Of a stretch of 64,000 nt of DNA, positions 22,992 through 45,421 are shown piece after piece. The first letter of the stretch is position 1; every line of letters begins with the position of its first letter. The translations under genes and the position numbers were made by a program. This DNA comes from Octopus sinensis (taxonomy: Eukaryota): NCBI RefSeq assembly GCF_006345805.1, contig NC_043002.1:82398001-82462000 (forward strand), read 5' to 3'. The notes under the pieces are model-generated. The model saw only the letters and a program-made list of their open reading frames with translations, searched no databases and was not told the DNA's origin.

Positions 22992-23976
22992 GGGTTAAAC
23001 TAAAGCGTTAAACCCACTCAAAGAAACAAAAAAAAATGTGTAATATGTGTAAAACAACTTCCTCTAAACGAATAGGAAAAAAAAATGCGCGCACGCGAAA
23101 GGGGAGTGGGGGAGGGGCCTCGGAAAATTCACATCGAGAATTTCTGAAATCGCCTGAGGGGCTGACCCGGGCACAAAAAAAAAAAAAATAGTGTAATATG
23201 TGTAAAACAACTTGCTCTAAACGAATATGACAAAAAAAAAATGCGCACTCGCGAAAGGGGGGGTGGGGGAGAGGCCTCGGAAAATTTACATCGGAAATTT
23301 CCGAAAGCGTCTGACCCGGGTACAAAAACAAAAATAGCGTAATAGGTGTAAAGCAACTTGCTCTAAACGAATATGATGAAAAAAATGCGCGCTCGCGAAA
23401 GAGGGTGGGGGAAATATGTACAAAAATACGGAGTTTATGATTCATATGTGAGTGTGTGTTCTTGATAATCGTTTAGAACAAGTAGTTTTACACCAATTAC
23501 ACTATTTTTTCTTAGTTTAAAGGCCGTGGACTGAAGATGTGAAATTTCCGAAGCCTCTCCCCCACCCCCTTTCGCGAGCGCGCATTTTTTTTTCATCATA
23601 TTCGTTTAGAGCAAGTTGCTTTACACCTATTACGCTGTTTTTGTTTTTGTGCCCGGGTCAGACGCTTTCGGAAATTCCCGATGTAAATTTTCCGAGGCCT
23701 CTCCCCCACCCCCCTTTCGCGAGTGCGCATTTTTTTTGTCATATTCGTTTAGAGCAAGTTGTTTTACACATATTACACTATTTTTTTTTGTTTTGGTGCC
23801 TGGGTCAGCCCCTCAGACGCTTTCGGAAATTCCCGATGTGAATTTTCCGAGGCATCTCCCCCACTCCCCTTTCGCGTGCGCGCATTTTTTTTCCTATTCG
23901 TTTAGAGGAAGTTGTTTTACACATACTACACACATTTTTTTTTTCTTTGTGTGGGTTTAACGCTTTAGTTTAACCC
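22992..23976. mobile_element. Non-autonomous foldback element of the Merlin family, with TIRs of about 420 bp each built from three subrepeats of about 140-150 bp
   Basis: Termini GGGTTAAACTAAAGCGTTAAACCCAC and its inverse. The subrepeat (tgtaaaacaacttgctctaaacgaata…atgcgcgc…gcgaaagggg) occurs three times per arm. The terminus and the internal tacggagtttatgattca block are shared with the right end of the transposase-bearing element at 45.1-45.26 kb. No TSD found. Confidence 0.85.
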
Positions 23977-25134
23977 AGATTTGCTTGTCAGCTGCTTAAC
24001 TATAACCAGTTGTGCATGTCACTTAATGGCTGATGCTATGTGCATCTCTTATCACAAGCAGAAATAGTGGGGGAGCATCATAACCATGTTTTGAGAAGTG
24101 TTTCACCCATCATCCTTAACCCTTATTCAGGGATGTCTTAAGCAGGATGAACTTGACCTGAAGAAAATTATAACTGGGTTCCACCTGTGAGGTCATGTGC
24201 TGTTCATCTTGATATGAGGTCACCATGTCACACACATGGTTTTTATGTATGTGCCTGGTGTATCCTTCCTTGTCAGATAGTATATTGGGCTTCGTATATT
24301 TGTACCCCACCATCACTTTGATGGCATGCATTGCTCTCATCGTCATCATCATCATCATCATAATAATTAATAATTTTTAAATTTTGGCACAAGGCCAGGA
24401 ATTTTAGAGTTAGAGAAGAAGTCAATTAAATTGACTCCAAGTTCTTCACTGGTACTTATTATCGACCCCAAAACAAGGATGGGCAGATCTTGTATGCTAT
24501 GTTCCTTTAATGCCCTAAAAACTTTTCCCTTGAATATGCTGTGCATCTTTTATACCATCAATTATGGTAATTCCTGTATTGCCATGTAGTCCAGCACGGT
24601 TCTTGCTTCACACTTTCTTTAACTGCATTTTAACAAGTAGCCTGTCTATGTATTCCTATAAATTTTCAATATAATCAAGATTTTCAAAGTATTTAGTGAA
24701 ATATCTGTAAATTTATGTATTGGTATATATATATTATGTTGGTGTTGACCAATTGAAATCTCATGTAATTAGGTTACTATTTAAACACTTTTGATACCAA
24801 ACCACCTGACATTGCCCCTGGCATTATGGTACAGACTTCCCATTTTAAAATCATCTAAATTAAAACTTTCCATTAAAATCTCAAGTTAATTTATGTTGGA
24901 AACATCAATTTAAAAATGATGAAGTTAATTCATTAAATTCTTCGTTATTAAAAAAAAAATTAATGTGTAAAGTGAAATAATGTATTTCAACAGAAATGTG
25001 GTAACACAAGGGTTAAATATCTCAGTATTGGCTTAGAAGCAAGATTGCTGATTAAATGCATAAATGGATAAATTGTCTTCATTTAGAGCATGGACTAATG
25101 TCTTAGGATAACCTCTATGAGGACAGTTAAGCCA

Positions 25135-25680
25135 TCATCATCATTGTCTTTTCTTGTCTTGAGACAGCATTCACCCGGGGTGGGATGAACTGGCTTCATT
25201 TATCCTCAATGCTGCATCTCTCACAAACGCTGACCAGACCCGGCGATTTGAGGCTAATGACCACGTGATCTCCAACCACTCCTTATTCCAGCAGTGAGTG
25301 CCGTAGATATGGGGTCCTAAGTTGGGTTCCAGATCAGCCTTCACTGTCATCAGCCAGGTTTTACGTTGTCCACCACATCACTTTCGCCAACCCTGAAGGG
25401 GAGCTGGGGCAATTGCTTCGTAGATGAATTCTCCTGGTTGACGATGGAGGGCATGACCCAGCCAATGCAGACATCTCGTTAAGATGACTTGTCGGAGGGA
25501 GGTGATTCTGCACTGGTGTTGCACCGAATTGTTGGAGACAAAGTGATGCCATTGGACACGAAGGATGCGGCGTAGACAGAGATGATCGAAGGATTCTAGT
25601 CGCTTAATTTCTTCCACCCTCATCGGCCATCACTCGCTGCCATAAAGGAGAATCGTTTGCACTAGTGAACTCATTAACTT
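25135..25680 (-). pseudogene. LINE 3' fragment (RTE-like, family distinct from the 57-60 kb element)
   Basis: RLESFDHLCLRRILRVQWHHFVSN…LHWLGHALHR resembles the LINE ORF2 C-terminus. Confidence 0.75.
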
Positions 25681-27215
25681 CATTGGTTGAAGTTAATGAG
25701 ATGTTTAAGACAGCAAGCTGGCAGAATCATTAGCTCACTGGTCAAAATGCTTAGCACCATTTCATTTGTCTTTATATTCTAAGTTGAAGTTGGTTGAAAA
25801 AAGAAATAGCAGTTATGCACAGGGGGGGTTGATGTGATTGACTTAACCCTTCCTTGTGTCAAAATTTGAAACTGAATTTAATGGGTTGTGTTGTTGTAGA
25901 AGGGTATCCAGCTGTAGAAATCATGCCAAAGCATACACTGGAGCACAGCATAGTCCTCTGGCTAGTTGGGTCCTGTCAAGTCATCCAGTCCATGCCAATA
26001 TCCAGCGTACCACCCACCAAATGTACTCACTCATTAAGTGACAATAAATGTGTTGTTGATTGTCTTAGAAAGAAGATTGATGGTTAAATGCATAAATAGC
26101 TAAATCGTCTTCATTTAGAGCATGGTTTAATGTTCACATGTAACATTTCCAATGGACATTCTTCAAAATGCGATAGGTGCTTGATTTAGGGATTCCGCTC
26201 TCATGAGTCATTTGTCATACAGATTTTTGTGGGGGACAGTGAAGGGTTTCCAGCAATTCTTTTTCCTTTAGGACAATTCCTTTTTCTTTACTTTCTTGAA
26301 TGCTCCTTATGGATGTCATGCACAGTTCCATCTAATTCAAACTTATCTTGGATGCAAGCAGTGTTGCATCGCATTGGTGGATCTTTGTGAAAATGACTTC
26401 AAATTGTCTTAGCACTTCCACGATGTTTCAGTGCTTCCAAGTCGCACTTTTTCATGAATTTTCTCCTTCAAATCTTTGTCATACTTCTGCCTTTACTAGG
26501 ATCAATTTGATCCAAAAAGAAATGAAAAATCCAGTGAGTTACGGAGAGTTAAAATGTGAGTACATTTTTTTGGCACACCCTGTAGAAGACAGACAGACAG
26601 ATATTAAATGATGATGATGATGACAACAATCCTTTTGATTGAAATCGCATTCAATATTTCATTGCAGCCTAAAATGGCAAGCTGACAGAATTGTTAGCAC
26701 AGCAGGCAAAATGCATAATGGTATTTTGTATATTAAAACAGCAAGCTGGCAGAAACGTTAACGCACCGAGCTAAATACTTCGCGGTATTTCATCTGCCGT
26801 TACATTCTGAGTTCAAATTCTGCCGAGGCCAACTTTGCCTTTCATCCTTTTGGGATTGATAAATTAAGTACCAGTTACGCACTGGGGTCGATGTAATCGA
26901 CTTAAACCATTTGTCTGTCCTCTCTGTGTTTAGCCCCTTGTGGGTAGTAAAGAAATAGGTATTTTGTTTGTCTTTATGTGCTGAGTTTAAATTTTGCTGA
27001 GGTTTTGCCTTATAAACTTTTGCGATCGACTTTGCCTTTCTTCCTTTCAATAAAATGAGTACAGGGGTGGTCATTGTCATTGACTTGCCCCGTCCCTCCA
27101 AATTACTGGCCCTGTACCAAAATTTGATAGCAATGCTTCATTGCAGCCTATTGAAAATGTATTTGTCTAACAGCTTCTACTTGTTATCTTAGTAAAATTC
27201 AATTCTCTCTTACAG

Positions 27216-27427
27216 ATGACTGAAGATAGTGCAGGGGTGATAACAGTCACCTGTGGAAATTTGGTTGGCAAACTACATATGAAGAAATTTATTTGTCCTG
27301 GCATTCACCGAGAATGTATTGAGTTTGAAGGCCGTTTTATCTCTCCAAAACTGTTTTCTGTCATGGGCGAGAAAGAAAAGCTGAAAGACTGGAAGAATGC
27401 TGTTCGAATAAATGGCATCCAACTCAG
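27216..27427 (+). CDS. GMEB-like SAND-domain gene, coding exon 1 (N-terminal part of the SAND domain)
   Basis: Acceptor tacag|ATG. VTCG…KFICPGIHRECIEFEGRFISPKLF…LKDWKNAVRINGIQL contains the SAND KDWK motif and is GMEB-like. Donor AG|GTATTT, phase 2. Confidence 0.9.
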
Positions 27428-28613
27428 GTATTTCATCTTGATTTTGATCTGTTTCATTAAAGTTTTTTTATCACAGTTTTTACCTTATTTGGAATCAAGG
27501 CACCACCTTGAAGAATTTTAGTCGAATAAACGAATCAATTCCAGTACTTTTTTTTTTAAGCCTGGTACTTATTCTATCAGTCTCTTTTGCCGAAGCACTA
27601 AGTTACAGGACCATAAACACAAACATAGACACATACACAATGGTTTTTCAGTTTCTGTCTACTAAATCCACTCACAAAGCTTTGGCCTGCCTGATGCTAT
27701 AGTAGAAAACACTTGTGCAAGGTGCCATACTGTGGAACTGAACCCGGAACCATGTGGTTGGGATGCAAACTTCTTATCACACAGCCACATGCTAATCTAT
27801 TCTAAGAAATTTAATGATATATGATTTATCAATGCAGTGATGCTTCTTGTTTATAAACAAGCACAATTTTGGGAAATTAAAGAATCTATTTGTATACTTT
27901 GATGATACAAGCAACACTTAATAGTCAAGACATCACTGTTGTCATTTTTATGTCTCAAGCTGCCCCTCCACTCCTGCTCATCACTTACTACATTCACCTC
28001 TACCCCCATCTCTACTCTTGTGCATAGCTAAGTGGTTAGGGTATCCAGCTTACGATTGTAAGCTTGTGAGTTTGATACTTGGCAGTATAGTGTTTCCTTG
28101 AGCAAGATGGTTTCACGTTGCTCCAGTCCACTCAGCTGGCAAAAATGAGCTGTAGCTGTAATTCAAAGGGCCAGCCTTGTCTTGTTCTATGTCATGCTGA
28201 ATCTTCCTGAGAACTACATTAAGGGTACCTGTGTCTGTGGCGAGCTGGCAGAATCATTAACACGCCGGGCGAAATCCTTAGCGGTATTTTGTCTGCCGCA
28301 ACGTTCTGAGTTCAAATTCCGCCGAGGTCGACTTTGCCTTTCATTCTCTCGGGGTCGATAAATTAAGTACCAGTTATGCACTGGGGTCTATCTAATCGAC
28401 TTAATCCATTTGTCTGTCCTTGCTTGTCCTCTCTGTGTTTAGCCCCTTGTGGGTAGTAAAGAAATAGGTACCTGTGTCTGTGGAGTGCTCAGCATCTTAC
28501 ACATTATTATATTGTGTGTATGTATTTGTGTGTGTGTGTATCCTAGTCTTGACATCATGTGGTGTTTGTAGGAAAAGCATTAAGCTGTAAAAAATCTGCC
28601 TCAACAAATTCTG

Positions 28614-28835
28614 GGTACTATTACCGAACAGTGGTCCCGGTGCGCACACACGCGCATCCGCAGTAGCTAGTAGTAAGTAGTCGATCCTAAATAATTTTTT
28701 AAACTAAGCAAATAAATTATTTTTATTAACAAACTAAGGTTAGGGTTAAAAAGTCGTTGTAGGATCGACTACTTACGACTAGCCTGCACAGATGCGCATG
28801 TGCACGCACCAGGACCACTGTTCACTAGTAGTACC
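28614..28835. mobile_element. GGTACTA-terminated MITE with 9-bp TSD CAAATTCTG (SAND gene intron)
   Basis: TIRs GGTACTA…GAACAGTGGTCC and GGACCACTGTTC…TAGTACC. TSD at 28605-28613 and 28836-28844. Confidence 0.9.
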
Positions 28836-28957
28836 CAAATTCTGTGTGGCCCATTCAGGCTTGGAAAAGTAGATGTTAAATAATAATAATGATGATAATA
28901 CAAATGTATAAAGTGGTGTAGAGTTGTTCTAAATGTCTTCACTTTCATTCCCTTCAG

Positions 28958-29295
28958 GAAGTACATTGAATCAGGACAGTTGGATTTTACTAATCACCAA
29001 GAGATGTGTACAGGTCGCTGTGTACCGCGAGTACCATTGAAGACAATGGTATTTGATGATGGCACTTTGGCCCCAATCTCAACTCTGCTGGCAGGGACTG
29101 GGATTAGCATTAAAGAAAACAATTATCTCTATGTTTCTGAACAGACTTCTGGCAAAATTGCTGAACCAGTAGGAAGTCAGTATACATATGTTAATCAATC
29201 TCAAAACCAAGATGACCCCGATATCAAACCAAGTGTACAGGTTCTGCATAGAGCTGTGACAGCTGAAAACACTGAAGAACAACAACCACCTGATG
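28958..29295 (+). CDS. GMEB-like SAND gene, coding exon 2
   Basis: Acceptor ttcag|G completes the Arg codon and gives RKYIESGQLDFTNHQEMCTGRC, matching the GMEB SAND C-terminal pattern. Donor G|GTATGT, phase 1. Confidence 0.9.
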
Positions 29296-29540
29296 GTATG
29301 TAATTTGCCATTTATTAACTAATGAACATCTATCCTTGTCTCTCTTTATCTTTAAAATCTCAACTGGCTCAAAGCCACTCTTGCCTCAATACGATTTACT
29401 GTGTCCCCCAAGCCAAGAAGTTTTGCCTTGCAAATTGCTTGGTGACCCTGTTGGTGTTGGTGCCATGAAGGGCATCCAGCTGTAGAAACCATTCAAGAAC
29501 AGACAATGGAGCCTGGTGCAATTCCAGCCTTACCAACTCC

Positions 29541-30025
29541 TGTAAAGGAACTGGTTGGAACAGGTTGTGTCTTTACACTGTTTGGATGCAACACAATTTC
29601 CTTTCTTTTGTTTCCAGAAACTACCAGTCAGGAACAAGAACGCAACCTTAAAAATATATGACTCTTTATTTTCTTATTTACAAAAGAAGGCACATTGGTA
29701 TCCACTTGGTTCGATATAGCAAGGCTGAATTTTAACACTTGTAAGATAACCCTCACAACAAATTCAGCAGCAACAGAGCAGGTCAAATCCCAAGCGTCTG
29801 GGACAGGAGAATAGGCTAATCACATGTTTAACACGTCCTCTCTCTTCAATAGCCATGTCTCAAGTCACCGACGCTAACAAGGAACGCGAAAGAATTTTCT
29901 TCCCCAGTCTCTAGCGCATGTGCATGAGGGAACTTCCTTAGGCCTTTCCAGAAGGTTCCAGCCCCACACATGCACACTGAAGAATGATGTCCCACACACG
30001 CACATTGGAAAATGACGTCACTACA
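29541..30025 (-). mobile_element. Solo LTR (Gypsy-like), 485 bp, inserted in an RTE tail
   Basis: TGTA…TACA termini, 4-bp TSD CTCC (29537-40 and 30026-29), and AATAAA on the minus strand near 29665. The interrupted RTE-tail sequence resumes after it. Confidence 0.75.
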
Positions 30026-30406
30026 CTCCTATCAAACTGCCCAACCCATTCCAGCATAGAAAAATGACATATGATGATGATGATCACTTCTGGTTCCTTT
30101 TGTTAGGCAATCTACCATAGAACCTAACTATTTTCTCTTTCTTTTTGTTTGTTTTGTTTAAGCTCTGCTTCTTCTAGAAATTCACATCTTTTATCTTTTA
30201 CTTGTTTCAGTCATTGGACTGTGGCCATGTTGGGTTACTACCCTAAAGAGTATTTTTAGTTGAACTAATTAACCCCAGTACTTTAATTCTAGTACTTATT
30301 CTATCATTGACTCATGACAAACCACTTACAGGGATGTTAACAAACCAACACTGGCTCTTAATGAGTGCTAGGGAACAAACACAAAGATGCACACACACAC
30401 ACACAC

Positions 30407-31575
30407 ATATTGGGTCATCCCATAAATAACACAGTTTTTTTCAACTACATGAACTAAAAGTCGGAGGGGGACAGGATAAACTACCTGCATCAACTTGCTA
30501 TAAAAGCAGGTAGTAATTTCACCTTGCTCTTATTCTTAGTGCAAGTTTTGAAGAGTGCAGTTCAATTTTAACAGTTACTTTTTCAAAGCTGTAAAGGAAG
30601 TGACAAAGGAGCATATTTTACTTAATGAGTTCAGTAAAGGCAACAGCACAACAGATAGTGCGAGGAATATTAATGCAGTATAGGGGGATCAGACAGTAAG
30701 TGTAAGCAAGTGCCAATGGTGGTTCCAGAAATTCTGAGCCAGAAACTACAGCCTAGAAGATGAGCATTGTCCTGGAAGATCTGTAGAGCTTGATGAGGAC
30801 ATCCTACAAATCTTGATGGAACAAAATCCCATTGTAACTGTTTGAGGAACTAGCAGAGAAGCTTGGATTTGTTCATTCAACCATTCATCGGCACCTGCAT
30901 GCCATGGGAAAGTCAGTAAAGTGGGTCAATGGGTTCCTTACAAACCTTCCGAGTCTAATCGTGTGCAGAGAGTGAATATGTGTTCTTCTCTGCTGTCACG
31001 TCTCATGAATGAACCATTTTTGGACCGAATAGTGACTGGTGACAAGAAATGGGTTCTCTATAAAAATGTCAACCGCCAAGAACAGTAGGTAGGGGAAGGA
31101 GAAACACTAGTACCCCAGGCTAAAGAAGGTCTTCACCCAAACCAAATGATAACAAAGGAGATCTACTGCGAGCAGCTTGAGTGGCTTAAATCAGCACTAG
31201 AAGGAAAACAACCCGTTTTAAGTTTCAAGGCAAAAGGTGTTCTTCCATTGGGATAATGCTCGTCCACATACAGGCCGGAGTAGTTTGAATGGGGAAACGA
31301 TGCCCCACCCACCCACCCACTGTGGTTGCTGGACATTGTGCCATTTGATTATCATTTATTCTGCAGTCTTCAAAATCATTTGGAAGAAAAAAATATGAAT
31401 TCTGTAGATAAGGTCAGAATAGCACTGGAAGAGTATTTTTCATCACGGACAAGTGAATTTTGGAAGAGGGGGGAGGGCTTACAAGTCTAACATATAGATG
31501 GAAGAGCATTGTAGAAAATGAAGGAGAATATATCTTAGATTAAAAAAGAAATTTGTTTATCTTAATTTTGAAAAA
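30407..31575 (+). mobile_element. Degenerate mariner transposon of a second family
   Basis: Left TIR-like tattgggtcatcccataaataa. Frameshifted WVPYK…QRVNMCSSLL…DRIVTGDKKWVLY and a PHPP-like motif. The right TIR is not recognised. Confidence 0.75.
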
Positions 31576-31599
31576 TAAAATAAAAAATAAATATCTTCA

Positions 31600-31770
31600 A
31601 TATCCTCCCGAAGAACCTGAGAGACCTGCATGGGGTGGATGCAGATGTCTTTAAAATAAAACTGGATCTCTTCCTGTCAGGTGTCCCAGATGAACCAACT
31701 TCACGGCAGGAGGTGCAGATGAGGGCAGCTGCATCAAACTCTCTCATGCACCAAATGGCAGTTGCTAAAA
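31600..31770 (+). mobile_element. LINE 3' end fragment (CR1/L2-like)
   Basis: ILPKNLRDLHGVDADVFKIKLDLFLSGVPDEPT…RAAASNSL resembles a LINE ORF2 terminus. Confidence 0.55.
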
Positions 31771-33298
31771 AGCATTCGTGAAGTAAAATCATGTAGCAAC
31801 ACCAAATGGCGGTGCCCCAGCATGGCCACAATCCGTGAGCTGATACTAGATAAAATAAAATATATAAAAAATAAAAAATAAAAAAACCCACATTATTTAT
31901 GAGATGAATCAATACTTACATATATACTTAAACATGAATTTTGTGGACAGTGACTTCAAAGTTTCAGTCTAATAACTGAAACAAATAAAAGATAAAAGAT
32001 ATTCTTTTCTACTCTAGGCACAAGGCCTGAAATTTTTTCAGGGAAAGGGCCAGTCGATAAGATTGACCCTCAGTACACAACTGGTACTTTGAACATCGAA
32101 ATAAATATCAATGGAAGTAGTAGTTGTGATACCTGTGCCGGTGGCACATAAAAAGCACCATCTGAACGTGGCCGATGCCAGCGCCACCTTGAGTGGCTTC
32201 TGTGCCGGTGGCACGTAAAAAGCACCAACTGATCGTGGCTGCTGCCAGACTCCTCTGGCAGACGTTAAATGATGATGATGATGAAAGGATGAAAGGCAAA
32301 GTTGATCTCGGTGGAATTTGAACTCAGAATGTAAAAACAGCCGAAATACCACTAAGTATTTCGCAGTGTGCTAATGTTTCTGCCAGCTTGCTACCTTAAA
32401 ATATAAAAGATATTACCACAAGAATGGTTTCCTGCTGGGTTTTATTTATTTTCTTACAATCTTTCCAAAAGTGAATTGTTTTAGCTTTCTATTGAAAGAC
32501 TGTCCAATTTTTTGATCCATGGAATAGCTTTTCTTTCACTTTGAATGCGTACCACTTGATAGATGGGTCTTCTCCCTGACTGTTCATCGAATTAACAGCA
32601 AAGTAGTGTTGGAGGCACAAAACAGAACTCAGTACACCAGTACATACTGTAAAGTGGTTGGCATTAGGAAGGGCATTTGGCCAAAGAAGCTTTGCCAAAG
32701 CTGAAACTGAAGTGCAATGCAGCCCTGTGGCTTGCCAAATCCTGTTGAACCAACCACACACACATACACACACATGATGAGCTTCTTTCTGTGTCTGCCT
32801 ATCAAATCCACTCACAAGGCACTTTTGTCAACTCTGGGTTATAGTAGAAGACACTTGCCCAAGGTGCCCAAGAGTGGAACTGAACCTAGAACCGTGTGGT
32901 TGGGAAGCAAGCTTCTTATTCACACAACCACTCCTTTCTAGTTTCCATGAAGATTATTTTCTTTACTTCTCCTTGTTTTACATATTTCACGTCCTTAATT
33001 AAAGCAATTTCTAAAAATTCTTTGCAGCCCCTTGAAGCCTCAATCTTCAGGGCCTTGAGTTGTTTCTTGAATACAATATTTAAAGGAAGATATTTGGTCC
33101 TGTAGTTTTTGGTTTATCCTATTGAAAAAGGTTTACTGTGGAATGTATTTTGAACACTTCAGCTGCGGACACTTGACATTTCATGTCAAGTGCCAAATTA
33201 AATATTCTATACTTCAGTGCTGTGCTTATCTCGAAAACTCTTTTTGTTTTAATAAGTCAAAATGAGTCTTTTTTGGTTTTGTTTCTTTCTTTTTGCAG

Positions 33299-33370: not shown

Positions 33371-35965
33371 GTAAGGTTTGAGCTCACGACTGTGATCATT
33401 GCTCTAGTAGCTTAACCACATAGCCATTGTACTTCATCAACTAACAACTGTTCTTGTTTCATGAAATACTTACCAAGACACATTCTCACACTGATAAATA
33501 AACTCCTTAGTATCTCTGTTATTAATCACCATCATCATTTGGCACATGTGGTCGTGATCCCTGTGCCAGTGGCACGTAGAAAGCACCTTCCAAACGTGAC
33601 TGATGCCAGCGCCGCCTTGACTGGCTTCTGTGCCGGTGGCACAAAAGCACCAACCGATCGTGGCCGTTGCCAGCCTTCCCTGGCACATAAAAAGCACCCG
33701 CCTCACTCACAAAGTGATTGGTGTTAGTAAGGGCATCCAGCTGTAGAAACACTGCCAGATCAGATTGGACCCTGGTCGAATCGTCCAACCCGTGCTAGCA
33801 CGGAAAACGGACGTTAAACAATGATGATGATGAAAAGCAATGACATTTGAACACCTGGAGGTTTGCTTTTCTATGTTAGTCTGTTTTACTGGCATTGACT
33901 AAGCTAAAGATATCTTAGTGGTTTTTGTATTGAGGGAAAATACTAATGAAAGCTAAACGAACCAACTGAGTTGATTGGAGACAAATTAGAATGTCATCTT
34001 TGCCATCATTGTTTGCTTTCCATGCTGTCAGGAGTTAGAGGGGTTGCCACAGTTTGCAGAATTACTACCCTCTTTGACATAGTTGCAGGAAAGCACCTTG
34101 TTCTTGTATTTTGTACTGGCAAGGTATCTATGGTTGGATGTACTTCAATCATTTTACCGAATGTACTGGGTGCATTTTATCATGGTGCCAGCTCTAGGCA
34201 GGTTGTTATGTCCTCAGTAAGAATAAAGGGTCCTTTCAACCTTAGGATACCCCTGCTTGTTTACCGACCTCTTTGCAGAGTGAATGGGGTACAGTTTATG
34301 ATGGCACCAGCACCAGTGAGGTTACCTTCTACTCAGCAAAACTGTTGCAAATCTCAGTTCTCTCTCCCTCTCCATATTTCTCTGCTTTATTTTGTGCAAC
34401 AAAGCAAACAACAAACATAATCTACAAAGTGTGGGAGGATTGATGGAAACAAACTAATATAACATCACCATCATTGTCGTCATCACTTTAACGTCTGTTT
34501 TGTGACGTGTCTGTGTCATTGTTTTGACATTGTGTGCTGTTGCAAATGAGCATCATTTATGTACAGTTTTTCCATGAAAAAATATCTGGCTATGGGGAGG
34601 TGCATGGCTTTGTGGTTAGGGTGTGGGATTCATGATTGTAAGATTGTGGTTTCGATTCCTGGACCAGACCATGCACTGTGTTCTTGACCAAAATATTTCA
34701 TTTTACGTTGCTCCAGTCAGCTGGCAGGAATGAGCAATCCTGTGGTGGACCATGAGGAATATATTTTCCAGAGAAACTGGGAAACCAGTCCTATGCTCCT
34801 GACGGAGTAATATGGACTAACCGATGGGGAAATATTATGTTGCTTGGAAACAGGTTAGGGTTGGCAACAGGAAGTGCACCCAGCCTTAGAATCTGTCTCG
34901 GTGAACTTCATCTAAAGCCCTCAGATGTCTTTATTCCTTACTCTTCGCTTAAAATACACTCAAAATAATTTCATTACATTCAATCTCTTTTTTTCTTTTC
35001 TTTTTGTAATCACCAGGCAGGTCTGTGTGCTTTGCAAGTGTGTGATCTCAGGTTCAATTCCAGTGCACAACACCTTAGTTTAATTGTCGTCCACCAGAGC
35101 CTCTGGTCAACGAAGTGAAAGTGCGTGGCTTCATGGTTAAAGTTTTCGGCTGACAATCATAAGGTCATGAGTTCAATATCCAGCACCACATTGTATCCTT
35201 AGGCAAGACACTTTATTTCACATTGCTCCAATCCATTCAGCTTATGAAAATGAGTTGTACCTGTGATCCAAAGGGGTCAGTCGTCACAGTCTGTGACACA
35301 CTGAATCTCCTTGAGAACTACATTGAGGATACATGTGTCTGTGGAGTGCTCAGCCACTTTAATTTCCCCAGTTGGCTGTTCCATTGATTCTATCAACTGA
35401 AACTTGTAACTGATGCAAAGCCAGTTACATCAACCAAATCTTTCATCATCATCATCATCGTTTAACGTCCGCTTTCCATGCTAGCATGGGTTGGACGATT
35501 TTGACTGAGGGCTGGCGAACCAGACGGCCGCACCAGGCTCCAATCGGATCTGGCAGTGTTTCTTTCCTAACGCCAACCACTCTGAGAGTGTAGTGGGTCC
35601 TTTTTACATGCCACTGGCATGGGGCCAGTCAGGCGGTACTGGCAATGACCTCACTTGAATCTTTTTACACATTCCACCGGCACAGGTGCCAGTAAGGTGA
35701 CGTTGGTAACGATCACACTCGAATGGTGCTTTTACATGCCACCAGCACGGAGAGAAAACTATGAAATCCTTTGGAAGGACTAACCTTGTTCTTGGGTGGT
35801 AGACTTTAGCTTCTGGTTTAGCACTATCACCACTTGGCTTTTGGATGTCTTTGTTAGTGTCCATTCTGTACCAGCACTCAGGCTGGATCTTTCAAATGAC
35901 AACTTCCTTTCTTTCTCCTATTAGTCTTGCAAAGGATCATGGGTGCTACTCTTCTCTGGCTAAAT

Positions 35966-36217
35966 CAGTGGTCCTCAACCATCTTTTTTTTTACCTATGG
36001 ACCCCTTTGATTCCTATTTTTTTCTACTGGACCTCAATAGCCACTCACTGGATATAAAAAAGAAATCCTACTGTATTTTTATAATTAAATATTACTAGGG
36101 ATTGTATAAAAAAATTAAAATATTTTGTGTATTGTAGAATTATAACCAACTTATTGCAGTTAAATTTTAAATAACAAACTCTTATATAGACCCACAAGGG
36201 TCATATGAGAACCACTG
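35966..36217. mobile_element. hAT-type MITE
   Basis: Termini CAGTGGTCCTCA…TGAGAACCACTG with an 8-bp TSD GGCTAAAT/GGCTAAAC (7 of 8 match). Confidence 0.75.
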
Positions 36218-36456
36218 GGCTAAACCATTAAAAATAAACAAGTGAAATAGTCCAGAAGAATTTTTTGAATTCTCTAAAATGGTATGGCTTACAGTTGATT
36301 CTAATATTCTATTCTAAATTTATTTTTACATTCTAAATTCTATTACATTTTCATTTTTCTTTTTATATATCTTAGGAATCAAACTTTCCATTGAGTATAT
36401 AATTGTTTACTGTTACTCCTTGATGAAATGATGTTCTTGTTTTTTGTCTCTTGTAG

Positions 36457-36579
36457 AAAGTCAACTGTTTTGGAAAGGAATCATTGAGCTCGGTCTTGCT
36501 GATGAAATATTTCGGGAAATCAAGACCACCTTGGACAATCTAAAATATAATCTCATTCGAAACCAATGTCCACTTGAAG
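36457..36579 (+). CDS. GMEB-like SAND gene, coding exon 4
   Basis: ttgtag|AA…GAAG|GTAAGT, phase 1/1, reading ESQLFWKGIIELGLADEIFREIKTTLDNLKYNLIRNQCPLE. Confidence 0.8.
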
Positions 36580-36645
36580 GTAAGTTTAACTTTGTTATAA
36601 ATCAATGTCAGATCAGTCCTGTATGAGAATATCTAGGCTCTAAAC

Positions 36646-36767
36646 CAGTTTTTCTCAACACTTTTACCCTTGCATAACCCTGAAAATAAATTACATCTCA
36701 AGGAACCTCTGCATAAAAAAAATTATATACCATGTCTTTCTCATATTTTTTTCATCGTAGTTCACGT

Positions 36768-36816
<49 letters not shown>

Positions 36817-36859
36817 ATATACTTGTGCGGTACCCCACAACTCCACTTTGTTATATATA

Positions 36860-36899
<40 letters not shown>

Positions 36900-37486
36900 T
36901 ATATATGGTTGTTATATTTTTTTGATAATATAATAGGTTAGATAGGATGATGTCTATATTACAATAACCAATAATATGTTGTACATTTATGGTAATACTA
37001 GCAGCATCGCCCGGCGTTGCTTAGGTTTGTTTCAACCCTTTAGAATTGGAATTTTTGAAAAGTAAAAATTTTGCATTATGTAGCTTGTTATCTCTATAAG
37101 TGAATATTTTTCTGGTTGCAATACACCGGAAAATGGAGACACAGTAGTCAAAAAGATCGTAAAAAATAGGAATTTTCATAGAAAAAAAGCACCTTTTTGA
37201 TGTAAATAATTTTTGGTGTTAACATGGTCTTGTTTGAATTTTTTCTTCTACCGAAGGAAGAGCAAGCCTTCTTCTATCATACTCTCAATTTTGGTCAACT
37301 TGCACCGCAGGGTCTTGGAGGAGATAGTGGTAGTTGAAGGCTACCAAACCTGCCATACACAGACAACTTCAGCTTTATATATAGAGAGATTATGAAATTA
37401 GCACTGGCTTATCTCTTTCTCGTGGAACCCCTAGGAACCTTTTGTGGAACTCTAGGGTTCTGGGGAACCCCAGTTGAGAAACACTG
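36646..37486. mobile_element. hAT-type MITE containing a nested Helitron (36998-37389, minus strand)
   Basis: Termini CAGTTTTTCTCAAC and GTTGAGAAACACTG, TSD CTCTAAAC/CTCTAAGC. The nested element has TC…CTAG ends on the minus strand, a subterminal GC-rich segment and an A|T target. Confidence 0.78.
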
Positions 37487-38935
37487 CTCTAAGCTATTCC
37501 AGCCATGACTGTCCTGTCTTTTATTGAACATTGTGTATTTAGGACTACATTATTCAGTGTGTCTCTCCCTTTTTAATGTGATAGTGTGTAATTTCAATGC
37601 AATAGTTGTAAACGAGTATCACTGTTGTACAAGCAGTGTCCTTTATTTCCAATCTTCCATGAAAATATGTCTGGCGGTGGAAAAATATTGTCTTGCTTAG
37701 AAACAGGTGTGTGTGGGTGACACAAGGGATATTTGGTAATAGAAAAATCTGCTTTGACAAATTCTGCCTTATCCATGCAAAGTATTTTTTGAAAGTCATG
37801 AGCTGCAAACTGTGGTGTTGTAGTCAATTGCCTTGTCAACAAATCATTGCTCACTTTGTGCTTTCAGTGACATCATCATCATCATCATTTAATATCTGTT
37901 TTCCATGCTAGCATGGGTTGGACGGTTCGACCGGGATCTGGGAAGCCAGGAGGCTGCACCAGGCTCCAGTCTCATCTGGCAGTCTTTCTACAGCTAGATG
38001 CCCTTCCTAACGCCAGCTACTCCGTGAGTGTAATGGGTGCTTTTTTCGTGACACCGGCACCGGAGGGAGGGGGCAGAGGAGGCTGGCAATGGCCACAATC
38101 AGTTGGTGCTTTTTATGTGCCACTGGCATGGAAGCCAGTCAAGGCGGCGCTGGCATTGGCCACATTCAGATGGTGCTTTTTACGTGCCACTGGCACAAGG
38201 ATCACAACTACAATTTCCATTGATTTTTGATGTTGATATACTTGACTCAATAGGTTTCTTCAAGCACAGGGTCGAAACGGTGTTTCTTTACTTGCCACCT
38301 GCACAGGAGTCAGTCCAGCGGCACTGGCAACGGCAGGGTGCCAGTCGTAGGACTTGGATGGGAAATAAAAGAATGCTTACTTGAAAACTAGGTAAGGCTT
38401 GATGACAGGAAGGCCGTCTGGTTGCAGAGCACTGCCTCAGTAATGTAAGATGTCAAGCCTGGAAAAAGAAGAGACAAAAAAAGACATAAAACAAATTGAG
38501 AAAGAATTTCTTTTCTGATATCAAAACCTTCAAGTCTGCTTTATTACTGAAAATTGATTTAAAGAATAATAATAAAATTGTAATATTCCATATCATGGCA
38601 AGACCGTTAGTATGCTGGGAAAAATGCTTAACTGCATTTCATGTTTGTAGAATCTGAGTTCAAATGCTACCAGGGTTGATGTAATCCACTTTCCACTGCT
38701 CTGAAATTGCTGGCCTTGTGTCAGAATACTTCACAGTATTTCGTCCATCTTGATGTTCTGAGTTCAAATTCGGCTAAAGCTGACTTTGCCTTTCATCCTT
38801 TTGCAGTCGATAAAGTAAGTACCAGTTGTGTACTGGGGTCGATGTAATCGACTTATCCCCCCCTCCCTAAAATTGCAGGCCTTGTGCCAGAATTTAAAAC
38901 CAGTGTTATTCCATATGCTTAATTGTGAATTGCAG

Positions 38936-39049
38936 AGGTACGGAAGGTTTCAAGAGTTGTCAGTGAACTGGGTTTGACATCGAAACTGAAATACAGGTTA
39001 GCAGCTCACAAAACTGACATGGAACGATAGAAAGATAAAGAACTGGAAG
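38936..39049 (+). CDS. GMEB-like SAND gene, putative coding exon 5 with an in-frame TAG at 39028-39030
   Basis: ttgcag|AG…GAAG|GTAAAG, phase 1/1, reading EVRKVSRVVSELGLTSKLKYRLAAHKTDMER*KDKELE. The acceptor polypyrimidine tract is weak. Confidence 0.6.
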
Positions 39050-39963
39050 GTAAAGTGATTCTTTTGTTTTATTTTCTTTGTTGGTATTGGTTTGAAATTT
39101 GTAAGTTTAGGTTTTTCGTTGGGGGATGGTTTTCATTCGAGCTGTTATTGTGGTAATTAAAAAGAAAAATGTGTTTGTCTTTAAATAAAACCTCTTAACA
39201 ACCACTTTGAGCGTCTTTTTGAGCTCCATGTGTGTAACACATGTAGGCATGTCTACAAAGTCAGTAAACAGCTCAGCTCCCATGACTTTCAGAAACATTT
39301 TGTCACTCAGAGTTGCTGAAGAACGAAACAAACTACCTGCTTCAGTTGCTAGTTGCTGAGACATTGCATCCTTTAAAACCCTCCATGCTTCCTGAAATTC
39401 GCCAACACTACACCTGATATCCCCCCACCTCCATACACATGCACACATGTATATCATGACTCCTCATACACTGGCCACTTTCCTGACTTTTCTACATAAT
39501 TCTATGTACTCTGTAATTCTATGCACCTTTGATGAATTGTAGTGCACCTGAGCACTATACACAATAATTTCATTATTATTATTATAGTTAGGTGTGTAAT
39601 GTTCAGGTAATTGTGTTTCATTTGGAATTGTCTTATTAATTCTCTGCATAGGTTGCAGTGGCTGCTACTATTGAAAAGGGATTGAGATTAATATAGTGGC
39701 TGCTACTGCTAAAATAGAATTTGTACTATTCGTCCAAAGTACTGCATGAAAGAAAGACTAGTGATTCAATCTCAGCCTGATCAGAAGTACATTATATATA
39801 TATATATATATGTGTGAGAGCCTCAGTTCAAATCGCATGTGCCTCGAATGGGCTGGAGTATTTCTATTTTGGATGTATTTGGGGTACTTAGTTGTGCCCG
39901 TGACTTAGTGTTTGCTTCTTCCATGGGTATGAGTAAGTATCTCATTTATTTCTTTTGCCACAT

Positions 39964-40018
39964 GTATCACTGACGAAGAGAGGGCTCTTAGTAGCTAACT
40001 CTGAAATTGGTCCGATAT
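39964..40018 (+). ncRNA. Decayed minimal hammerhead ribozyme motif
   Basis: GTATCA-[CTGACGA]-AGAG…CTCT-[GAAA]-TTGGTC-CGATAT. The core is canonical; helices I and III carry transition mismatches. Confidence 0.55.
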
Positions 40019-41794
40019 GGTAATAATGGAATTTTTTAGAAATTTCTGTCGACCTTTTTTCAAGTAGCGTGCGTATTGTGAAAAAATTATATGGTTAATG
40101 GACAATATGTCCAATTTTTCGGCATATTTGGCATTAGAATTTTTTTCCTTTGCCCTCATTTATGAATTGTTTATAAATTTAACCGTTAAAGGTATTTTTT
40201 AATATGCTGGCCATTGATAAAATTTTTTTCGAGAAAATATTTTTTTTCGAAAAGAATTTTATCTTCACATTTGATATATATATATATATACTGTTGTGTC
40301 TGGGGAGAGTATTTTCTTTTTGTGCCTTATAATCTAACACACTCACCGGTAAAATTTCCACTTTTTTCTTATTTTTATTTTTCCTGAAATTTTCGTTGCG
40401 TCTTGCAACCTTTTCAATAGTTTTGACTCTCAAAAATCCAAAAACGAAATATATGTGTATATATAAAAACGTCAGTGATCCTGAGTTCTAAATATTTGTT
40501 TGGATGTAATTTCATGCTTTCAGATAAAAACTTTCCTATTTGTGTTATATCAAACAATCATTTTCCAAGCTACCATGGCTGAAACGATGGCTTTTGTTCA
40601 CACAAGTTGTTCTACAGCAGGATATTTTTGTGATTGTTTGCCACTTGGAAGTAAAATCGTTTTCTCAGTCAGCAAAACTGTAAAAAGCTGAGTTACCTAC
40701 CTTGTTCTGTGTGTGGGGGGGTGCAGGGGATGTCGATAACACGATGGTTATGGCAAACCTTGAACTTATAAGGCTTGTGGCTGTTGTTCAAAAATCTTGT
40801 AGCCATTGAGAGACATTTTGTTTTTGTTATTAAAAGGAAAATAATTAATTAACTGAGGCTTTGTCTACAGGAAAAACAAAGATTAAAATCCAAAATTTAT
40901 CAGATACCAGTAAACTCTGACATCAAATATGTCGAGCCAGGTTAATTCAACATTCAAACCTCAGAAGAGAAGAGGTTGGTTAAAAAGCCATCCTTTCTAT
41001 CTTCGGTTTGGTTTTCATGCCTATCCTCACCTCTGGTCGTAAATGTTAGGTAATGACTGAAAGAGTCATCATCATCGTTTAACGTCCGCTTTCCATGCTA
41101 GCATGGGTTAGAAACCAGTGAGATCTGGCCCCTCACATCTATCCAACAATGACATTCTAAAATTAAACAGTCTCATCGTTGACATCTGAAGGCCACAAGA
41201 TAATACAGGATTAATTCAAAGCCATGCAAATAAATAAGAGTAATCTGAATGCTAAAGAGTTAACTTGCAGCTTGGAATTATATATTTCCATACACAAAGT
41301 CTGTTGAGATAATTTTTTCTGAGACAAAATCCCACAGTGAATACCTTTCATGTGTGCAGGAGTGTGTTGAAAAATGTGTACAGCATCATCGTTTAACACC
41401 CCTTTTTCCACGCTAGCATGGGTTGGACAGTTTGACAGGAACCGATGCGCCAGAGGCCTGCACTGAACTCCGATGTTTATTTTTTGTTTGGCATGGTTTC
41501 TACATTGGATGCCCTCTTTCATGCCAGCTACTTCACAGAGTGTACTTGGTGCTTTTATCCACGGCACCAGCATTAGTGAAGTCCCCAGGTATCTGTAGGA
41601 CAAGACCCCCCCTCAACATGTTTGTAGAAATTAAATACATACCCTTGAGTATAAAAAGGATCCATTTGTGTTGGAGATGTGTGTATTTTGGAGACCTGCT
41701 GGAAACTTTGGTTAATATTAGAGACATTTAGTGGGCTTGTGTTCGATAATGGCGATGATCCACCTGGAAATATAAAAGTAAAACAATCATTTTA

Positions 41795-42155
41795 TCTCTA
41801 TATATATAAACGGCAAAATGTCTGCGTGTTCTTCATACAAATCCACAATTTTTCAGTTAGAGGGCTCGCACTTTCTATGGTCACTCAAAACCATCCAAGG
41901 GTGGTTGTGCACATCTTTACATTTCCCCAGTCACCCCGCAAAGCCATTAAAAAAATCAATAGAAGTGACTTTTTTGTGAATTTTCTATCCAAAACCCAAT
42001 CAAAATGCCCGAAACTTGATACGCCAATTGAATGACAGCTAGTTGTATGTGATTGGTCGGAGATTTGGACAGTACTCGTATGTATGTGCGCACGCATGCA
42101 GCTGTATATGCATGCATTAGCACTATGACCTGGCGTTGCTGGGTCATAATGCTCG
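41795..42155 (+). mobile_element. Non-autonomous Helitron-like element
   Basis: Starts a|TCTCTATATATATAAA and ends with the hairpin atgacctggcgttgctgggtcat and a degenerate CTCG|T. Confidence 0.5.
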
Positions 42156-43676
42156 TGTCTTATAATCAGGGCCAGATTATAAGGCCCATAAAGGCCCCAA
42201 GCACTTAAAAAATTTTGCTGCCCCTACATATAAATGTAATTCAAAATTTGAAAAGTTTTCTATTCTTTTTTAATTGCAAAGTCTTTGATCAGATCCTCAA
42301 AATTACTCTTGCGTAACACATCTGCTTCTATACTTAATAGAGATAAGACATCAAGAATATTATTTTAGCAACTTGAAAGTGGTTTCTTTTGTGCCGTAAA
42401 CCCCTTACCATTTCTGTGGTGTCCTCTTCCCTTGATGCTTTAAGCACATGCTTATAATGCTTAGTGGTTAAGCCAGCGCTGTTTATAATGATCATATTTT
42501 TGGGGTTATGCAATTCCATGCAGCCTTCACACGAAACCAGGTTCAGCTGCTTTAATTTCTATTAACGACTGTTTGGTTTTATTATTTGCTGAGAAATTAT
42601 TCATTGCCTTCATAAACAGAATAAGATTTAATAATGTGGTGTGATACACTGGAACCTTTAAAAGGCTGAGCATCCTTTCTACTATAGGCACAAGGCCTGA
42701 CATTTTGGGGGAGGGGACAAGCCAATTACATTGTCCCCAGTATACAACTGGTATTTATTTCACCAACCTTGGTGGAATCTGAACACAAGATGGATGAAAT
42801 GCAGTAAAGCATTCTGTCCAGCATGCTCATGGTTTTGTCAGCTCACCACTTTATAATTAGGCATTAGTATTGACTACACACACACACACACAATAGGTGC
42901 AGGCATTGGCTGTGTGGGTGAAAAGTTTGTTCTGCAACCAAATGGTTTTAAGTTCAGTCCCATTGCATGACAATACAAGGAAGTGTTTTTTTTTTCAGTT
43001 AAGCACCATCCATACATGGCACCAGCCGATCATGGCTGTTGCCAGCCTCCCTTAGTATCTGCGCCGGTGGCATGTAAAAAGCACCCACTACACTCACGGA
43101 GTGGTTGGCGTTAGGAAGGACATCCAGCTGTAGAAACTCTGCCAGATCAGACTGGAGCCTGGTGCAGCCTCCTGGCTTCCCAGACCCTGGTTGAACCGTC
43201 CAACCCATGCTAGCCTGGAAAACGGACGTTAAACAATGATGATGAACCCAGACCAACCAACCCCATCCATGAATGAATTGTGAATAATTAAATTTGCTCT
43301 TACCAATTTGCATCATTTCAGGTTCAAAGATGGGCCACGATACAGCTGGGGACGTGTGTTGTCGAGTGAAGGAGGAGTAAGGAGTCTACAAAAATGTGAA
43401 ACAGGAAATGTGAAATTGTGAAAGTAATGTCAACAGGAGAAATAATAAGTGAGATTAGAAATTAGCCGTTTGATTCTTTTGATAGCAACCTGCCCAAGAC
43501 TGCCTCTGATTCTACGATACAAGCTTCCTATTTTAAAGTGATTTAAATTAAATCCTTTAATCAAAATTTCACGTTAATTTATATTTTAAACATCAGCTTA
43601 ATAATGACAAAAATATTTTACTTAATTCTTTTTGAAGAGTGTGTGTGTGTTACATAAAGTGAAATAACAAAGCCAA

Positions 43677-45262
43677 GGCAGTGTGAAATTTCTAGGACAA
43701 TCAGTGATTGTCTAGGACAAACAGTGATTTCTAGGACAATCACTGTTTACAAGACAGTGATTGTTGGTACCAAGTTCTATTGAAGTCCAGGCCCCTAAAG
43801 ACAGTTAGTTCTTGTAAACAACTGTCCTTAGACAAAAGACTGACCTTTCATTGGACTAGTGTTTACTCATCCCATCTTCTGGTGTGGAGGATTTCCTGCT
43901 CCTTGGTACCAACAAGTTCTTATTCATTTCAGTCGTGGATACACAAGCGTTAAGTTGTATGATACAGAATGGCACTTTGCAATTCATGTGAATTAACATT
44001 ACAGGATGGGATTCACCAATTTAATAATGACAGTGAGGCATTAGATTTCTTCCGAAAACATATCATTCCCAGCACAGTAGACTGCCCTAGATGTCATTTA
44101 CCATGTACACTCCGCGAAAATACAAGCATCTTCCGATGTCGAAGGACTGTTTGCCATCGAAGACAAAGGCCCATGCAATGTGGATATTCTATATCCCTAT
44201 ACAGCAACACTTTTTTGGAGCGGAGTCAGATACCACCCTGTAAAGTCCAGTTATTTGTAAATTACTTCCTTACAGACTGTTGGTCGCATGTATTAGTCAT
44301 GGAGAATTTAAACATTTCATATCCGACCTCGATTGATTGGCGATCCTTCTGTTTGGAGGTTTGTCAGCATTGGGTTGAAAATTACCAGGAGTTGAAGTAG
44401 AGAATGATGAGACGGTTATTGTAAGAAGAAAGTATAATCATGGAAGACTCACAAAAACTATCTGGCTTTTCGGTGGGATAGAGTGAGTAGCCAAAAAGAA
44501 AGTTTTGATACCTCTTTCATCTGAGTGTGGTGAAGAGGAAAGGCGAGATGCCACCACACTGATCCCCTTAATTACCCGATATATACGCCAAGGGTCCATA
44601 GTATATAGCGATTCTTGGGCTGCATATAACTCTCTTGGAAATCTCGGCTATACCCACTTCCGCATCAACCACAGTGAAAATTTTGTTGATCCTACAAATG
44701 CATCGGTGCACACACAGACGATAGAGAGATTGTGCGGCTCAGTTAAGAGATCAGTTGTTCACCCAGGCATACGTGCATGTTACTTAAAGCAATACCTCTC
44801 CAAGTTCCTATTTATGGAAAGTGCCAAGAGAATACACGTATTCTTATTGGCAGCAGCAAGTCTTTATCCTGGCCCGAGATAATTTTTTCCTCCAAACGCA
44901 ACCCATCTCATTTCTTTATCATCACTGTCGATGGACCAATCAAAGAGGTATGTATACATTATCATTTTCGTAACATAATTTCTGTAGTATTTCAAGATGT
45001 TTCTGACACGTATTTTGATTCACATGGCGGAGATCCAACATTTCTTCACTTTTTTCCAGAATTTCTTCTCTTTTTTTTTTTTTTTGCGAAATATATACAT
45101 AAATACGGAGTTTATGATTCATGTGTGAGTGTGTGTTCTTGACCCCCACCCCCCTTTCGCGTGCGCGCATTTTTTTTTCATATTCGTTTAGAGGAAGTTG
45201 TTTTACACATATTACACACATTTTTTTGTTTCTTTGAGTGGGTTTAATGCTTTAGTTTAACC
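43677..45262 (+). mobile_element. Merlin/IS1595-like DNA transposon with a disrupted transposase; the right terminus matches the 23-kb foldback element
   Basis: ORFs 43969-44400 (CPRC…FRCRRTVC…SNTFLERS…TSIDWRSFCLEVC) and 44505-44882 (RRDATTLIPLI…IVYSDSWAAY…INHSENFVDP…HTQTIERL), with RRKYNHGR…WLFGGIE between them. Subterminal repeats of about 20 bp (ctaggacaatcagtgatt) at 43691-43760. Right end GTGGGTTTAATGCTTTAGTTTAACC. No matching left TIR nearby. Confidence 0.88.
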
Positions 45263-45421
45263 GTAATCTTTTGATAATTAAAACAATAATCATTTGTGCT
45301 TTTGACCTGAAAATTGGCGGGAGGGCATAAGTGAATTACATAGACCCTAGTACTTGATTGCTTGTAATTTTTTCTACCTGGAAATGATGAACTTTGAGAG
45401 TAATGATGCGATCTTTTTACT

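Follow-up and report, generated by a model that had tools for sequence, protein, structure and literature searches.

How did the 5′ part of a transcription factor gene come to lie within an intron of a zinc-finger (ZNF) gene in Octopus sinensis, between ends of a single family of DNA transposons? The locus in question is a block of 22.3 kb (22992-45262) in a stretch of 64,000 nucleotides from O. sinensis CM016864.1 (about 82,398,001-82,462,000); this stretch is called the window here, and all positions refer to it unless another locus is named. The block interrupts intron 1 of unit A of a C2H2 ZNF cluster, of which units B and C are also in the window, and it carries part of a GMEB1-like gene with a SAND domain. 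An earlier note, drawn from the sequence alone, had described the block as a candidate composite (macro)transposon, in which Merlin ends had moved or copied a host transcription factor (TF) gene into the ZNF cluster.

In plants, host genes are known to be duplicated and reshuffled by class II transposons, through alternative transposition of Ac/Ds elements, through macrotransposons and through Pack-MULEs. To our knowledge, clean natural examples of host-gene duplication by class II elements in animals are few, and we found none described for the Merlin superfamily.

Three junctions of the block fall, to the base, on termini of a Merlin family that the window otherwise lacks. For this reason it is, judged from the sequence, beyond reasonable doubt that the family was mechanistically involved in making the duplicate. 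The parental gene lies on another chromosome, CM016861.1. Both findings agree with the earlier proposal; a clean composite hop is not supported. We give about an even chance to the reading that the block is a one-off, old, interchromosomal composite insertion, produced by aberrant Merlin transposition together with break repair.

Termini of the block

The 25-nt terminus GGTTAAACTAAAGCGTTAAACCCAC is found at three sites in the window, where none would be expected by chance (Table 1). The two outermost sites are outward-facing, compatible ends of one Merlin family, and they bracket the block. That the block is bounded by inverted Merlin termini had been recognised before, although with a start that was off by one base. 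The termini read GG(G)TTAAAC... and match the Merlin superfamily in their terminal 5′-GG and in the length of their terminal inverted repeats (TIRs); members of this superfamily have TIRs of 24-462 bp, a terminal 5′-GG and a target-site duplication (TSD) of 8 or 9 bp, and are related to the IS1595/IS1016 group (PMC8101967).

The left edge is formed by a complete palindromic miniature inverted-repeat transposable element (MITE) of this family, whose terminus the earlier note had described without stressing that the element is palindromic and has both of its ends. The two arms (22992-23412 and 23976-23558, ~420 bp each) are 94% identical; each contains about three subterminal repeats of ~150 bp, and the centre of the element is 145 bp long. 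Homology to the centre and the right arm is seen in the 3′ end of the Merlin copy that forms the right edge of the block (45088-45262) and, more fully, in positions 38203-38614 of the O. vulgaris locus L005. Since the right end of the Merlin copy is homologous to the centre, the subterminal repeat and the TIR of the MITE, the MITE is an internal-deletion derivative of this autonomous Merlin family.

The right edge is formed by a Merlin copy with a transposase pseudogene. Merlin transposases contain a DDE_Tnp_IS1595 catalytic domain, often together with an N-terminal IS1595 zinc ribbon. Comparison with Pfam detected DDE_Tnp_IS1595 (PF12762) with E=5e-18 and 66 bits against a cut-off of 27, and Zn_ribbon_IS1595 (PF12760) with E=6e-5 and 23.3 bits, just below the cut-off of 25.4. 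The open reading frame (ORF) is colinear with residues 1-299 of a 299-aa relative (P0022) and contains one in-frame stop, which is common to O. sinensis and O. vulgaris; a 15-bp deletion is present in O. sinensis only. The O. vulgaris copy retains the entire centre and two or three subterminal repeats. As the ORF of the transposase is preserved over its full length, this element has lost its left end and nothing more. No remnant of a left arm was detected in 41000-44000 by short-word blastn and nhmmer, which agrees with the earlier description of a transposase relic lacking its left TIR. A protein search with the intact N-terminal transposase ORF of O. vulgaris returned only three relatives and no Octopus copy, and an exact look-up of the C-terminal piece of the transposase returned no record.

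The cargo and its parental genes

The cargo of ~17.1 kb consists of a 3.2-kb upstream region and coding exons 1-5 of six, with their introns, from a GMEB1-like gene; fragments of the short interspersed nuclear element (SINE), mariner and long interspersed nuclear element (LINE) types are embedded in it. The sequence from 23977 onwards, in which the earlier note had seen no relation to the unit C paralog, corresponds to DNA upstream of this gene on the other chromosome. Five GMEB-like exons had also been reported, and tblastn and Pfam confirmed five SAND/GMEB-like coding exons. A parental copy elsewhere, which that note had named as evidence in favour of its model, lies on CM016861.1.

SAND (PF01342) was detected on P0002 with E=6e-24, and the sequence KLKDWK, with the KDWK motif, is present. 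Over its first 182 residues, the cargo protein shares 96% identity with O. sinensis GMEB1. In the annotation, the nested gene encodes a GMEB-like protein of 255/279 aa, in contrast to 390/414 aa for parental GMEB1. The last parental exon, which encodes the C-terminal 116 aa, was not copied, and the ORF of exons 1-5 is intact but for a premature TAG. The gene in the block is incomplete, with five coding exons out of six and a premature stop. Among annotated O. sinensis proteins, only the block copy and the two parental genes were found. Between the O. sinensis and O. vulgaris copies of the duplicate, the ratio of nonsynonymous to synonymous substitution rates (dN/dS) is 0.59, a value obtained over 256 codons with few substitutions.

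The duplicate was compared with the parental loci L002, L007 and L001 of O. sinensis, with the plus and minus copies of L004 of O. vulgaris and with L006 of O. bimaculoides. Positions 23977-39375 align with L002/L007 at 90-96% identity, and the alignment with the O. vulgaris and O. bimaculoides parents extends on to 41066-41112. The parental gene in O. sinensis forms a head-to-head inverted pair (L002/L007, CM016861.1:4,897,984-4,960,094), with arms of more than 25 kb and 95.5-98.3% identity. The inverted pair is also found in O. vulgaris (L004, OX597816.1), and a single copy was seen in O. bimaculoides (L006).

Identity to the parents is not uniform along the cargo. A tract of 1.86 kb (32972-34829) shows 2 differences from L002, as against ~200 aligned positions (mismatches plus gap columns) that differ from the orthologous O. 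vulgaris block. This tract looks like a recent interchromosomal gene conversion or, alternatively, a homogenisation of paralogs during assembly polishing. In 28500-29000, identity is 98.4% to the ‘minus’ parental copy of O. vulgaris versus 91.8% to the O. vulgaris duplicate.

Junctions inside the block and the donor site

Homology to the parental gene starts exactly at 23977, the base after the MITE terminus. With a slash marking the junction, the window reads ...GTTTAACCC/AGATTTGCTTGTC at this point, and all parental copies read ...CAATACCAC/AGATTTGCTTGTC. The donor site itself, at CM016861.1:~4,933,617 in O. sinensis, is uninterrupted (...CAATACCAC/AGATTTGC...) in six out of six parental-type copies. 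Neither a MITE nor an excision footprint was found at the donor breakpoint in these copies (three from O. sinensis, two from O. vulgaris and one from O. bimaculoides), nor was Merlin found in intron 5 of the parental loci.

At its other end, parental homology stops in the head of a SINE, ~300-470 bp upstream of the last parental exon. The O. vulgaris parent has the entire SINE in intron 5 (L004 ~39205-39380), and homology to O. bimaculoides ends at 41066. Between this point and the Merlin copy lies an orphan segment of 2.86 kb (41113-43968), which is 99-100% identical in O. vulgaris and which, besides common repeats, has no match in L001, L002, L004, L006 or L007. Its ORFs gave no Pfam match, and an exact look-up of one of them returned no record. 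Short direct repeats (43690-43760) lie within the orphan segment, directly upstream of the transposase ATG.

The target site

The flanks of the block are nearly contiguous in unit C, a paralog that is unoccupied. On the left, 22848-22990 is 96.5% identical to 63609-63751 of unit C, and the right flank shows 96.1% identity (Table 1). The earlier note had estimated that ~90 bp separate the two matches in unit C; the measured distance is 91 bp. The left flank aligns with copies of a SINE family at 13380-13607, 26741-26961 and 28240-28470. SINE copies elsewhere run through the insertion point, and the 91 bp of unit C continue the old SINE that spans the site. Because the SINE consensus runs through these 91 bp, they are ancestral, and unit A has lost them by deletion.

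No direct repeat of 8-9 bp that could represent a TSD was found around either element or around the block as a whole, and the absence of such a repeat had been remarked on previously. The outer flanks read ...gatctcata and gtaatcttt..., and their state is identical in O. vulgaris. Removal of the block leaves an intron of 1425 bp (donor 22767/8 to acceptor 46463/4), in line with the ~1.4 kb expected from the earlier note.

The annotated O. sinensis gene range (17216-46942) spans the block. In the zinc-finger exon of unit A, the first finger is disrupted by a frameshift (46706-46990), so that ...GKSFSQKVT is followed by a stop, and then by SKSHLTLHK... in another frame. O. vulgaris has the frameshift as well, and the ZNF gene that received the block may itself be a pseudogene. 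When the protein of unit A was used to search for the corresponding O. bimaculoides intron, generic C2H2 proteins were returned, and two neighbouring ORFs had no cluster entry. P0007 had no record either; the GMEB locus of O. bimaculoides was located by way of P0025.

Another palindromic MITE-like repeat lies directly to the right of the block (45409-46141; arms 45414-45668 and 46141-45888, 95% identity). It recurs upstream of units A and B, at 21240-21646 and 49682-50088.

Reality and age of the block

The orthologous locus of O. vulgaris (OX597819.1), which comes from an independent assembly, contains the same block with the same four junctions at 97-100% identity. The O. vulgaris block has its own number of subrepeats and differs by the 15-bp transposase indel. 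Because O. vulgaris carries the block with identical junctions, a misassembly, which the earlier note had left as a possibility, is excluded, and the event predates the split between O. sinensis and O. vulgaris.

An upper limit to this age comes from O. bimaculoides. The duplicate has in common with the O. sinensis and O. vulgaris parents a SINE (26741-26961) and a segment (25111-25681) that O. bimaculoides lacks. The duplicate is also closer to the sinensis/vulgaris parents than O. bimaculoides is, in a tree with no farther outgroup for rooting. Since the SINE and the segment are common to the duplicate and its parents, and since the duplicate is nearer to these parents, the event came after the O. 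bimaculoides split. On the evidence of common SINE insertions, the insertion is placed between the O. bimaculoides split and the split of O. sinensis from O. vulgaris.

Table 1. Positions of the block, its parts and its target site in the window
Feature	Position	Strand	Remarks
ZNF unit A upstream exon	22700..22767	+	donor 22767/22768 (ACG/GTAAGT); paralogs in unit B (50245-50368) and unit C
Left target flank, ZNF intron within old SINE copy	22848..22991	+	96.5% identity to unit C
Palindromic Merlin-family MITE, complete	22992..23976	.	985 bp; TIRs 22993-23017 and 23951-23975
Terminus GGTTAAACTAAAGCGTTAAACCCAC, outer end of MITE	22993..23017	+	
Terminus GGTTAAACTAAAGCGTTAAACCCAC, inner end of MITE	23951..23975	-	
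Duplicated 5′ part of GMEB1-like (SAND/Spe-44) gene	23977..41112	+	90-96% identity to parental loci
SAND coding exon 1	27216..27427	+	tblastn of P0001/P0002; Pfam SAND E=1.1e-22
Coding exon 2	28958..29295	+	tblastn
Alternative coding exon 3	33298..33369	+	isoform X1 only
Coding exon 4	36456..36578	+	boundaries to ~2 nt
Coding exon 5	38929..39030	+	premature TAG at end (CAG in parents); common to O. sinensis and O. vulgaris
SINE head, internal junction where parental homology ends	41066..41112	+	~47 bp of SINE
Orphan segment, 2.86 kb	41113..43968	.	reverse SINE 43019-43245 and short repeat fragments
Merlin (IS1595-like) transposase pseudogene	43969..44882	+	full length, one in-frame stop; right element 43969-45262
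Merlin copy right end	45088..45262	+	55 bp of centre, one subterminal repeat, TIR 45238-45262
Terminus GGTTAAACTAAAGCGTTAAACCCAC, right edge of block	45238..45262	-	1 mismatch
Right target flank, ZNF intron	45263..45391	+	96.1% identity to unit C 63843-63971
ZNF unit A zinc-finger exon	46464..47904	+	acceptor 46463/4; frame shifted near 46939 in both species
Part of unoccupied paralog unit C absent from unit A, 91 bp	63752..63842	+	flank alignment

A possible route to the block

The composite insertion favoured above could have arisen in a few steps. A MITE and an autonomous Merlin element would have inserted independently, ~100 bp apart, in the ZNF intron; as these would have been separate insertions, their outer flanks would never have formed a TSD pair. 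Cleavage by transposase at the two ends that faced each other would then have released the short stretch between them; its loss would explain why 91 bp and a TSD are missing. The broken end left at the MITE terminus would have been joined to the GMEB1 upstream region, or would have primed copying there, and ~17 kb would have been copied. This would account for the flush junction at the MITE and for a donor that is free of elements. Synthesis is proposed to have stopped, or switched template, in the SINE; the break would then have been closed, with filler DNA, by end-joining onto a Merlin side that had been resected, which would explain the missing left end of Merlin as well as the orphan segment. 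This order of events is inferred; the variant with resident elements and break repair is the one that needs the fewest extra events.

In an alternative variant, the block would be a composite insertion of the type known from maize, in which reversed donor ends are re-replicated and joined by non-homologous end joining (NHEJ). We also rejected a pure reversed-ends model with resident elements: under it, DNA from upstream of the parental gene and a left TIR still intact would lie beside Merlin, and neither is present.

Several points weigh against a composite insertion made in either way. The mechanism is reconstructed from a single product that is several million years old. Microhomology at the junction of MITE and cargo amounts to 1 nt, or to ACC-C if a gap is allowed. 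The variant with resident elements needs two insertions of the same family within ~100 bp, and we know of no citable animal precedent for interchromosomal copying of ~17 kb as it requires. The maize-type variant would have left a TSD at the target, where there is none, and predicts that the orphan segment should derive from upstream of the parental gene; the segment was not found within the 6.8-7.5 kb upstream of that gene. Finally, a donor allele that carried the elements could have been lost from the population.

Other explanations of the block

A donor allele of that kind is central to a canonical macrotransposon, in which a MITE upstream of GMEB1 and a Merlin copy in its last intron would have hopped together as a 22-kb unit, the donor being afterwards restored from the sister chromatid or lost. 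Much of the architecture would follow from such a hop: outward-facing compatible termini of one family stand exactly at both edges, the flanks lie almost next to each other in the empty paralog, a parental copy is found at another locus, and the cargo is flush with the inner end of the MITE, as if the two had adjoined each other at the donor. The boundary MITE lacks a TSD of its own, which follows the same logic as in the maize Wc macrotransposon. However, a matching 8-bp TSD was the confirming evidence in Wc; here there is none, and 91 ancestral bp are gone from the target. Six parental copies from three species show neither of the elements, nor a footprint, at the two donor breakpoints. The right-hand element has lost its inner end, and 2.86 kb of unrelated DNA stands between it and the cargo, the right end of which lies away from any terminus. 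With no TSD, no donor elements, a deletion in the target, a cargo that ends off a terminus and a fractured right element, the canonical hop is not supported. It would call for three or more additional events (loss of the donor allele, a neighbouring deletion flush at the TIR, and loss of the inner end), and we regard it as unlikely. Nor did the annotated O. sinensis proteins give any sign that the block moved as a unit more than once.

Transfer by homology is improbable. It would require a Merlin element in the ZNF intron and two family members at GMEB1, with a double crossover or gap repair by synthesis-dependent strand annealing (SDSA) between them. Ectopic exchange between these loci does occur, to judge from the tract 32972-34829 and L002, and arms of ~420 bp could support recombination; but the same undetected donor elements are needed as for a macrotransposon, the TSD of the original insertion would be kept whereas none is seen and 91 bp are lost, and the orphan segment and the missing left end are left unexplained. 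Still less credence is given to a segmental duplication independent of transposons, such as the capture of a fragment by NHEJ with Merlin elements arriving at both edges later by chance. Nothing speaks specifically for it beyond the repeat-rich nature of the octopus genome and the position of the right end of the cargo in a SINE, whereas a family found nowhere else in the 64 kb has its termini, to the base, at both outer junctions and at the left inner one; later insertions would, in addition, have brought TSDs of their own, and neither element has one. A chimeric join made in assembly through repeated MITE copies has a practically negligible chance. The edges of the block are indeed repeats, and one internal tract looks homogenised with a paralog, but the O. 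vulgaris assembly shows the same block and its four junctions at 97-100% identity, with species-specific subrepeat numbers.

Comparison with known systems

Composite insertions in maize are generated by alternative (reversed-ends) transposition of Ac/fAc together with re-replication; they are 10-23 kb long, are joined by NHEJ or microhomology-mediated end joining (MMEJ), and have an 8-bp TSD (Zhang et al. 2014, PMC4270019). The block is similar in that outward-facing transposon termini flank a segmental duplication of comparable size (22.3 kb versus 10-23 kb), the source of which was copied and not lost. It is also similar in its order of parts: a complete element with its flank, an internal junction (here 41112/41113), and a further flank with a fractured element. 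Unlike the maize insertions, it involves Merlin and not a hAT element, and an animal and not a plant; it has no TSD and has lost 91 bp of its target. In maize, both segments come from one nearby donor on the same chromosome, whereas here the gene copy came from a different chromosome and no source matched the second segment.

Macrotransposons built from pairs of Ac elements are credited to Huang and Dooner (2008), as cited in PMC9910405, and a Tam3L macrotransposon created the maize White Cap (Wc) locus, with a matching 8-bp TSD as confirmation (10.1101/082677). For Tam3L, an abortive insertion of one end, accompanied by a small deletion of the target, has also been inferred (10.1101/082677). 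Like these macrotransposons, the block has two elements of one family that bracket host sequence, a boundary element without its own TSD, and flanks that are contiguous at an empty site; in both cases a new locus gained, and kept, a duplicate of a host gene. The matching 8-bp TSD and the elements at the progenitor locus that were seen in those cases are both missing here.

There are further parallels. In bacterial composite transposons of the Tn5 and Tn10 type, the outer ends of two copies of an insertion sequence-like element delimit the cargo, and such units move repeatedly and make TSDs. The block differs from these in being represented once among annotated O. sinensis proteins, in lacking a TSD, and in having one complete and one truncated element. 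Drosophila has giant transposons bounded by foldback elements, while Pack-MULEs and Helitrons capture genes, Pack-MULEs carrying small fragments between the TIRs of one element. The block shares with the former a palindromic element at the edge of a large cargo of host DNA, and with the latter the duplication of a gene fragment by a class II element. These systems belong to other superfamilies, and repeated mobility is not in evidence here. Taken together, the block is best classed with the composite insertions of alternative transposition, not as a functioning composite transposon.

Other elements in the window

Several further repeats were observed in the window. An intact reverse-transcriptase ORF of 880 aa (57580-60222, minus strand; Pfam RVT_1 E=5e-29) belongs to a LINE-like element, which is adjoined by a tandem array of ~61-bp units at 57047-57532. 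A partial second copy with 89% identity lies at 3286-4245, and a GC-rich and strongly GC-skewed region at 4000-7000 may extend it. A mariner-type transposase ORF of 296 aa is found at 10644-11534 on the minus strand (Pfam Transposase_1 E=2.5e-24). Beside it, at 9977-10183 on the plus strand, is a second Merlin-like relic, which is unrelated to the family described here, contains stops, and is 32% identical to P0022. By eye, a mariner-like fragment was also recognised in an intron of the cargo (30838-31487, plus strand). Finally, a direct repeat of 443 bp with 98.9% identity (60394-60836 and 60805-61246) has an inverted partner.

Consequences for the octopus genome

As read from the sequence, the product is a truncated SAND-domain paralog of 255/279 aa, which lies in sense orientation within a ZNF gene with a broken frame. 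The similarity of parts of this paralog to its parent suggests that the two still exchange sequence by gene conversion.

In O. vulgaris, a gene model of 624 aa (P0021; L005 10001-41256, corresponding to about 18780-47901 of the window) combines the upstream exon, the SAND exons and the zinc-finger array of unit A. This model bypasses both the premature stop of SAND exon 5 and the frameshift of unit A. P0021 could represent a real chimeric transcript or an artefact of gene prediction.

The fullest account of the locus would be that a Merlin break in the germ line captured ~17 kb of a TF gene from another chromosome by replication-based repair. Animals would then have, in this block, a first natural equivalent of the maize composite insertions, and its paralog, kept in two species, may be spliced to the zinc-finger array as a SAND-C2H2 chimera, in line with the prediction of P0021. 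We offer this account as a whole only tentatively, as a possibility that falls well short of an even chance.

Junctions resolved to the base, a donor, an unoccupied paralog and a copy in a sister species are enough to test models of how DNA transposons duplicate genes between chromosomes. The outcome in the octopus is a new truncated SAND gene within an expanded cephalopod C2H2 cluster, and this bears on the growth of lineage-specific TF repertoires in octopus.

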